A stretch of DNA of 63,584 bases, filler included, from Olpidium bornovanus S191 (lineage: Eukaryota > Fungi > Olpidiomycota): assembly GCA_017911155.1 (NCBI GenBank). It is 30 parts of 30 records of this genome, joined end to end, with 100 filler letters (N's around TTAATTAATTAA, not from the genome) between each part and the next. Parts side by side here need not be neighbours in the genome. Positions count along the whole stretch, not along the records: positions 4,480 to 5,495 come from JAEFCI010012950.1; 29 more parts are not named here. One strand, written 5' to 3'. Under the pieces are notes generated by a model. That model saw only the letters and a list, made by a program, of their open reading frames with translations, made no database searches and was not told where the DNA came from. Positions 4,380-5,595 of this stretch are shown here, one piece after another (positions within the stretch are counted from its first letter, which is position 1; each line of letters opens with the position of its first letter). The position numbers and the translations under genes are program-made.

Positions 4380-4667
4380 NNNNNNNNNNNNNNNNNNNNN
4401 NNNNNNNNNNNNNNNNNNNNNNNTTAATTAATTAANNNNNNNNNNNNNNNNNNNNNNNNNNNNNNNNNNNNNNNNNNNNCATGAAGCGCGTTTTTCTTTT
4501 CGTGCCTTTTTTTCGCGCGCGCGCGCGCGCTCGCGCGTCGGGAGAAGGAAGGTGGGGGGGCGGAAGGGCGGGAGAGGAACGGAAATGAAAAAAAAAAACG
4601 TGGCCGAAACACCCCAACCACCAACCGCCAACCACCACCACAACCGCGGGGGAGACGCGGGGGCGCG

Positions 4668-5410
4668 ATGGCGGCGCTTTTCTCCAACATCACGCGGACG
4701 AGCAACAGGAACCCGGACCCCTCCGGCTTCCTCGAGGTTTATGGCGGCATGCAGATCACTCTGGCGGTAAGCGGGACCCTTTTGCTTCCCTCCACCCCGC
4801 CTGAAAAACGCGCACACTGACGCACACCCCGCCGGTTTCCGTGTTATTCATTCTTGTTTGTCGACGTCGAACCCTCACACGGTTTCGAAACTCCCGCTTG
4901 CTCCCTCTCCGGGCCCCGGCCCACGTCCTTCCGCTCTTTTTTTGCATTTTTCTCTTTCCGTTGGGTTTTTTTTTCCTCGTGCGGGGGGTGTGACTTGTAC
5001 CTTCCCTTTTGGTGTTTCCCTCCCCCACCCACCCACACCCATGCCCGCCGGTCACCTCGCGTTTCTGGTCAGTATTTCAATGGCATCGTTCTTTTCGTGG
5101 GTGCCCTCTGCAACGCGCTGATATTGACCGTGTTGCTCAAACACAAGAGCATGCGCAAAGGCGAGTTGGGAAAAGTAACGACTGCCGGGACATTCCTCTC
5201 CCCCCCCACCCTGCACCCCCCTCTCTGCAAAACGCTGGCGGGCGGTGCGGGCCCGGAGACTAATCCGGGCAAAGCGGTCTTTTTTATATCTTTTCCGCAG
5301 TGCGATATTTTCTTGCAGCGAACTTGACCGTCGCCGATCTCGGTCTCTGCTTGGTGAACTTTCCCATATTTCTCCACAACGCGTCGCACAGGCATTACGC
5401 GGCAGGCCAG
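4668..5410 (+). CDS. Class A (rhodopsin-family, 7tm_1) opsin-like GPCR, N-terminus to ECL1, 3'-truncated
   Basis: Exons 4668-4766, 5073-5160 and 5301-5410 splice to MAALFSNITRTSNRNPDPSGFLEVYGGMQITLAYFNGIVLFVGALCNALILTVLLKHKSMRKVRYFLAANLTVADLGLCLVNFPIFLHNASHRHYAAGQ. This has an N-glycosylation sequon (NIT), TM1 GxxxN(1.50) and TM2 NLxxAD(2.50)L. Confidence 0.82.
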
Positions 5411-5439
5411 GTTCGACTCGGGAACGGGGACGCGGTTGT

Positions 5440-5480
<41 letters not shown>

Positions 5481-5595
5481 GGGGGTGGGGGGGGGNNNNN
5501 NNNNNNNNNNNNNNNNNNNNNNNNNNNNNNNNNNNNNNNTTAATTAATTAANNNNNNNNNNNNNNNNNNNNNNNNNNNNNNNNNNNNNNNNNNNN

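Follow-up and report, generated by a model that had tools for sequence, protein, structure and literature searches.

The question raised by this locus is whether a gene starting at position 4668, on a short contig assembled under a fungal name, encodes a class A G protein-coupled receptor (GPCR), and whether such a receptor could act as a light sensor. Rhodopsin-family receptors dominate animal signalling and are rare and patchy elsewhere. The original prediction, made on a window of 63,584 nt (the whole stretch of DNA that was analyzed), had described the gene as an animal-type, opsin-like receptor, possibly a photoreceptor. The analysis covered positions 4480-5495 of the window (+ strand, from JAEFCI010012950.1; hereafter, the piece), which has a G+C content of 61%, with a GC3 of 0.76 for the gene. 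With a probability of about 0.8, the piece carries the 5' part of a nuclear gene from a GC-rich eukaryote, transcribed and with introns, which codes for an orphan class A GPCR that is probably not a retinal photoreceptor.

Transcription and splicing of the gene

Logan contigs from three public RNA runs belonging to two studies (X1, X2 and X3) were compared with the piece. The gene is transcribed and spliced as predicted, and its mRNA extends for about 2 kb. The joint between 4766 and 5073 (GT..AG, 306 nt skipped) was found in the RNA contigs of X1, X2 and X3, and a 214-nt contig of X3 (record 11) joined 5160 to 5301, with 140 nt skipped; this second joint was reported as 5158|5299, a 2-base ambiguity that resolves to GC..AG. 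The second joint appeared in X1 and X2 as loose ends at 5160 reading TGCGATATTTTCTTGC, which corresponds to the start of exon 3. Contigs from the three runs departed from the genome at 5410/5412 and then read CGGCTGCAC…, those continuing past 5410 being 2157 nt (X1 record 4) and 2213 nt (X2 record 8) in length. A fourth exon, present only in the RNA and read from 30 letters of this continuation, has the sequence (GT)CGGCTGCACGCTGCACGGTATATCCATCGT and encodes VGCTLHGISI, giving the junction …AAGQ|VGCTLHG…. Both junctions of the original prediction (4766|5073 and 5160|5301) were therefore backed by RNA contigs, and its claim of a eukaryotic, non-bacterial source was borne out as well, since spliced RNA rules out a bacterial origin.

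The exon translations of the original prediction were reproduced for all three exons, and the following features, all on the + strand, could be placed along the piece. The upstream region (4480..4637) contains a (CG)12 run at 4514-4537 and a partial CCAACCA repeat according to the tandem-repeat listing; it was covered by no RNA contig, had no Pfam or Rfam matches, and is presumed to be promoter or untranscribed 5' flank. The 5' UTR (4638..4667) was delimited by RNA contig coverage, with matching to the piece beginning at 4638 in X1 record 1 and at 4655 in X3 record 9, and no ATG was present upstream of 4668 in this RNA-covered stretch. The 26 nt found upstream of 4638 in X1 record 1 (CTCTTTTCCATCTCCGACGGCCACAC) differ from the genomic sequence, which lacks an AG acceptor at 4638; they were found at no other place in the piece, and possibly represent an off-piece upstream 5' UTR exon, a join made by the assembler or a variant of the CCAACCA repeat.

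Coding exon 1 (4668..4766) translates as MAALFSNITRT…ITLA, and comprises the start codon and a predicted 33-residue extracellular N-terminus with an NIT sequon. After an in-frame stop, the ATG at 4668 is the first to occur, and the 33-codon exon ends at a GTAAGC donor (4767). Intron 1 (4767..5072; 306 nt, GT..AG, phase 0, pyrimidine-rich), set by the RNA joint 4766|5073, includes a T-run in which contigs of X1, X2 and X3 have two extra T after 4936 with respect to the piece, due either to an assembly homopolymer error or to a strain difference. Coding exon 2 (5073..5160), preceded by a TGGTCAG acceptor, translates as YFNG…SMRK plus one base; translation, hydropathy and alignment to the TM1 of the two full-length relatives described below (P0001 and P0003) place TM1 in it, with N1.50 in GALCN, followed by the first part of ICL1 (KHKSMRK). 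Intron 2 (5161..5300; 140 nt, phase 1), defined by the RNA joint 5160|5301, is of the non-canonical GC..AG type and carries ACTAAT about 40 nt upstream of its acceptor; the GC donor (AAG|GCGAGT), confirmed by RNA, had been overlooked previously. Coding exon 3 (5301..5410), with TTCCGCAG as the acceptor sequence before it, translates as (V)RYFLAANLTVADL…YAAGQ and, based on its translation and on Pfam family 7tm_1, holds the end of ICL1, TM2 with D2.50 (NLTVAD) and an ECL1 with an NAS sequon.

The start of intron 3 (5411..5495), with its GT donor at 5411-5412, was placed where the RNA contigs leave the genome (5410/5412). A 56-nt G run inside this intron (5440-5495) forms the edge of the piece and had zero RNA coverage; it may reflect a truly low-complexity stretch at which the assembly broke off, or an artefact of two-colour chemistry. 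Joined, exons 1-3 code for 99 residues (109 with the RNA-derived next exon), and two hydrophobic stretches were found in the spliced peptide (residues ~30-58 and 63-87). Minus-strand and read-through ORFs of the piece had no Pfam matches, and the sole Rfam match in the piece (E = 0.91) was rejected as being at chance level.

Besides the productive transcripts, a 362-nt RNA contig (X1 record 2 and X2 record 6; window positions 4740-5316) retained intron 1 up to 5067, skipped 5068-5147 (GT..AG), and then joined 5148-5160 to 5301. This skip eliminates the greater part of TM1 together with the normal acceptor, and the reading frame stops at 4818-4820; the productive joint had a word depth of ~18, and this contig one of ~13. 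The contig has the look of an unproductive isoform or of an intermediate in splicing. A minor 59-nt contig of X3 (depth 3) joined 5096 to 5392 (GT..AG, 295 nt skipped), which points to an infrequent alternative joint or to an artefact.

Taken by themselves, the intron-retaining contigs of X1 and X2, with their TM1-removing skip, their stop codon and a depth of this order, would favour a decaying or non-functional copy of the gene, most of whose transcripts would be unproductive. Such a scenario is nevertheless extremely unlikely: productive joints were found in X1, X2 and X3, the open frame runs unbroken from the first exon to the RNA-only one, P0001 and P0003 share all diagnostic residues, and total-RNA libraries often contain partly spliced RNA.

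Homology to class A receptors

In the Pfam search, exon 3 alone matched 7tm_1 at E = 0.012 and 15.5 bits (profile positions 20-52), a value below the gathering score of 30.5; neither exon 1 nor exon 2 gave a match on its own. The language-model neighbours of exon 3 all belonged to 7tm_1 clusters, and a phmmer search of exon 3 alone against the PDB returned only marginal matches to GPR84 and NXF1 (E > 0.6). An exhaustive HMMER search with exon 3 across 1.84 billion representative proteins produced one real match, P0001 (576 aa), at E = 4e-7 and 68% identity (P0001 residues 63-99); the second match, P0002, was discarded as spurious, being a low-complexity repeat protein. The gene's own full-length protein was not found in that search. 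P0001 itself matched Pfam 7tm_1 at E = 1.2e-40 and 140 bits, with residues 47-357 aligned to profile positions 2-260.

When P0001 was used as the query against 5.8 billion clusters, its sole close relative was P0003 (590 aa, 84% identity), which also carries the 7tm_1 family according to precomputed Pfam annotation; the next match was fish GPR161, at 24% identity. Word-index searches with P0001 residues 1-400, 40-125 and 286-375 retrieved only P0003 and fish GPR161, or nothing, metagenome scans with a degenerate RYFLAANLTxAD pattern and with the P0001/P0003 alignment yielded no relatives, and a scan of prokaryote genomes found nothing. The number of relatives across these multi-billion-protein collections thus stands at two, each derived from a single transcriptome contig (Logan SRR31163008 and SRR27165743). 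The two come from other species, as their transcripts have a G+C content of 48-50%, versus 61% for the piece. An AlphaFold model of P0001 built on a two-sequence alignment was too poor to use (pLDDT 37).

The likeness of the gene to both relatives extends over its N-terminal 100 residues, with ~50% identity, no gaps and the same numbering of key residues. In local blastp, the spliced peptide shared 51% identity with P0003 over 95 residues (no gaps, 105 bits) and 49% with P0001 over 104 residues, and the alignment to the relatives spanned both exon junctions into the RNA-only fourth exon. In the MAFFT alignment, exons 2 and 3 directly adjoin each other on both relatives; the N-terminus encoded by exon 1 has the same length as that of P0001. 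Positions N1.50, D2.50 and C3.25 correspond to residues 47, 75 and 102 in the peptide and in P0001 alike, and the N1.50-D2.50 spacing is the canonical 28 residues in the gene (GALCN, NLTVAD) and in both relatives. The motifs KVRYFLAANLT, NFPIF and YAAGQxGCTLHG are common to the three sequences, as is an NA[ST] sequon in ECL1; this NAS sequon (5365-5373) is kept as NAT in both relatives (P0001 residues 89-91). As for the N-terminal glycosylation sequon that had been proposed, NIT is present in the gene, but it is not conserved in P0001 and P0003.

The disulfide cysteine C3.25, which the original prediction had listed for checking in the rest of the gene, was found in the RNA-only fourth exon, immediately beyond exon 3 (…AAGQ|VGCTLHG). 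The relatives have the ECL2 cysteine (IYCTGG) as well as ERY and NPFIY, and the CWxP motif reads CWGV in them, P6.50 being missing. Asp at 3.32 is absent, which indicates that the receptor is not aminergic either. The weak 7tm_1 match of exon 3, the collinear full-length relatives and the score of P0001 against the family make the predicted assignment to class A GPCRs, already advanced in the original prediction, well supported; it is partly a transitive assignment through P0001 and P0003, because the peptide alone falls below the Pfam gathering score.

Exons 1-3 would encode an extracellular N-terminus that is short and can be glycosylated, followed by TM1 (N1.50), ICL1, TM2 (D2.50) and ECL1, and the next exon would open TM3 with C3.25. 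Judging from P0001 and P0003, a complete protein of about 580 residues is expected, with ERY in TM3, the ECL2 cysteine, CWGV in TM6, NPFIY in TM7, ~80 residues in ICL3 and a Ser-, Thr- and Pro-rich C-terminal tail (35% S+T+P) of ~200 residues. By analogy with these relatives and with GPCRs in general, a diffusible extracellular ligand may bind the 7TM pocket; a rearrangement of the ERY and NPxxY switches would then lead to activation of a heterotrimeric G protein, and phosphorylation of the tail would bring about desensitisation. What was observed at the locus comprises transcription, splicing, the TM1-TM2-ECL1-C3.25 anatomy and the 7tm_1 homology.

Opsin similarity and light sensing

The ungapped alignment of the 57-residue core to bovine rhodopsin, given in the original prediction, was confirmed against the rhodopsin sequence retrieved in the PDB search (18/57 identities), and none of 20,000 shuffles matched either its identity or its BLOSUM score. 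With the next exon included, identities rose to 22/67, comprising G-x-x-G-C-x-L-x-G around C3.25. This similarity was not specific to opsins. Among the PDB matches of P0001, the C3a receptor (53.4 bits) and squid rhodopsin (53.3 bits) were followed by bovine rhodopsin (47.8), galanin R1 (46.1), kumopsin (45.7), TAAR13 (44.3) and 5-HT1A (43.8), so that many class A subfamilies lay within about 10 bits. Similarly, a TM1-TM3 profile that included the exons of the gene matched a bovine rhodopsin fragment (35.3), NPY-Y2 (34.9), kumopsin (34.8) and CCK-A (31.4). Opsins therefore tie with C3a, NPY-Y2, galanin and CCK receptors, and "opsin-like" is not a specific label.

The residues associated with retinal binding were read directly where the RNA allowed it, and otherwise from the relatives. 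Position 3.28 (E113) is His in the gene, as given by an RNA loose end, and also in P0001 and P0003. Since TM7 of the gene lies off the piece, position 7.43 (K296) was judged from the relatives, at ~50% identity: it is Leu in both P0001 and P0003, whose TM7 reads …ISATAAL[L/V]NSTCNPFIY, and no Lys occurs at any position of TM7 in either of them. The E181 position (six residues before the ECL2 Cys, read by eye) is Arg in P0001 and P0003. An identity of ~50% leaves room for another residue, and the gene itself may differ from its relatives at 7.43.

That room would be needed if the gene were a true type-2 non-animal opsin, in which the unseen TM7 would carry Lys7.43, bind retinal and serve phototaxis or light sensing. 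Squid, bovine and spider opsins are indeed among the best PDB matches of P0001 (E = 2e-13 to 4e-11), the opsin match of the TM1-TM3 profile reached E = 1e-7, the identities to bovine rhodopsin extend across C3.25, and a lysine-bearing, opsin-like GPCR has been described in a chytrid (PMC5410147). Still, this is very unlikely, in view of the Leu at 7.43 and the lysine-free TM7 of both relatives, the Arg at their E181 position, the His at 3.28 in the gene itself, and the equal scores of non-opsin receptors. Because the relatives are devoid of Lys7.43 and of both counterion Glu residues, and the gene has His at 3.28, it is probably not a retinal photoreceptor, and the role in light perception considered in the original prediction was not supported. 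On these residues, the gene probably encodes an orphan ligand receptor rather than a light sensor.

Source of the contig and relation to known receptors

The piece was found in nine sequencing runs from three studies, all under one organism label, with 0.05 to 0.50 of its words present; eight were RNA runs (two studies), and one was an unclassified run (third study). None of the indexed DNA runs under that label contained it, only soil metagenome being matched (0.07-0.08 of words), and a deep polyA run with the same label had no reads matching the piece. These two absences, together with a label under which many studies filed ATAC-seq, Hi-C and "metagenomic" libraries and which hence looks like that of a host or model organism, and with the nature of the piece itself (a contig of 1 kb that stops in a G run), would be consistent with a contig derived from an associated organism (a small animal, a parasite or a soil protist), in which case the finding of a GPCR in a fungal genome would be an assembly or labelling artefact. 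This possibility is rather unlikely, as the stretch recurs in the eight RNA runs of the label and in the unclassified run of the third study; moreover, the gene is a real, expressed eukaryotic gene whatever its source. As regards animals in particular, a G+C content of 61%, a GC3 of 0.76 and short introns are unusual for them. An animal source is considered unlikely, given that GC3 value, the short introns, and the fact that no animal protein exceeded 24% identity, the closest one to the P0001 query being fish GPR161. The piece contains no taxonomic marker, and the preferred reading remains that of a nuclear gene from a GC-rich eukaryote.

The gene is an addition to the known non-animal rhodopsin-family GPCRs, within a lineage that is very sparsely sampled. 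A gene with opsins included among its best animal matches, in a GC-rich genome of non-animal appearance, provides one more data point on the origin of opsins. On present evidence, it is predicted to encode an orphan receptor that lacks the light-sensing residues; it is therefore of use as a catalogue entry and for inclusion in early-GPCR phylogenies rather than as a new photoreceptor, and its importance is moderate to low unless a full-length sequence or a phylogeny links it to the origin of opsins.

In comparison with animal opsins (bovine and squid rhodopsin, kumopsin), the gene is alike in the 18/57 identities from TM1 to ECL1, N1.50, D2.50, the 28-residue spacing and GxxGCxLxG; it differs in having His for Glu at 3.28, and its relatives differ in the loss of Lys7.43 and in the Arg at the E181 position. 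The similarity to animal opsins is no greater than that to C3a or NPY-Y2 receptors. The intron positions of the gene also differ from what we take to be those of vertebrate rhodopsin genes.

Among fungi, twelve rhodopsin-family GPCRs were reported in Allomyces, Batrachochytrium and Spizellomyces (PMC3251606), and a 2025 survey of fungal genomes counted 984 rhodopsin-class GPCRs, mostly from early-diverging lineages, as class 15 (PMC12842992). Members of the family also exist in some bikonts (PMC3971589). The view that such receptors are nearly absent outside animals and chytrids is outdated in the light of the fungal survey (PMC12842992) and of the opsin-like receptors of choanoflagellates (PMC12716839). 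Five motifs of the family formed by the gene and its relatives were absent from the supplementary files of the 2012 paper (PMC3251606), three of its peptide motifs had no occurrence in the literature searched, and no fungal protein appeared among the homology-search matches of P0001. The rhodopsin-family GPCRs of early-diverging fungi are alike in having D in TM2, ERY in TM3, NP in TM7, and the ECL1 and ECL2 cysteines. The "chytropsin" of S. punctatus, the only one of these non-animal receptors proposed to bind retinal (PMC5410147), keeps the retinal lysine, in contrast to P0001 and P0003.

Choanoflagellates offer a further parallel. Opsin-like "metazoan-like Rhodopsins" without Lys296 were described in Salpingoeca macrocollata and S. 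punica, and their best animal matches were opsins, followed by somatostatin-, opioid- and galanin-type receptors (PMC12716839). Compared by description, the PDB matches of P0001 follow the pattern of their animal matches, and Lys296 is lacking in both cases; position 296 is Ser or Val in the Salpingoeca proteins (PMC12716839) and Leu in P0001 and P0003. A more far-reaching reading, which we regard as improbable, is that the gene, P0001 and P0003 belong to an undescribed, sparsely sampled non-animal lineage of opsin-related class A receptors, which would represent the ligand-binding stock that gave rise to animal opsins. In its stronger version, if true, the copy in the window would keep Lys7.43 and be a genuine non-animal type-2 opsin. 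The lineage so proposed would be comparable to the K296-less "Rhodopsins" of choanoflagellates (PMC12716839).
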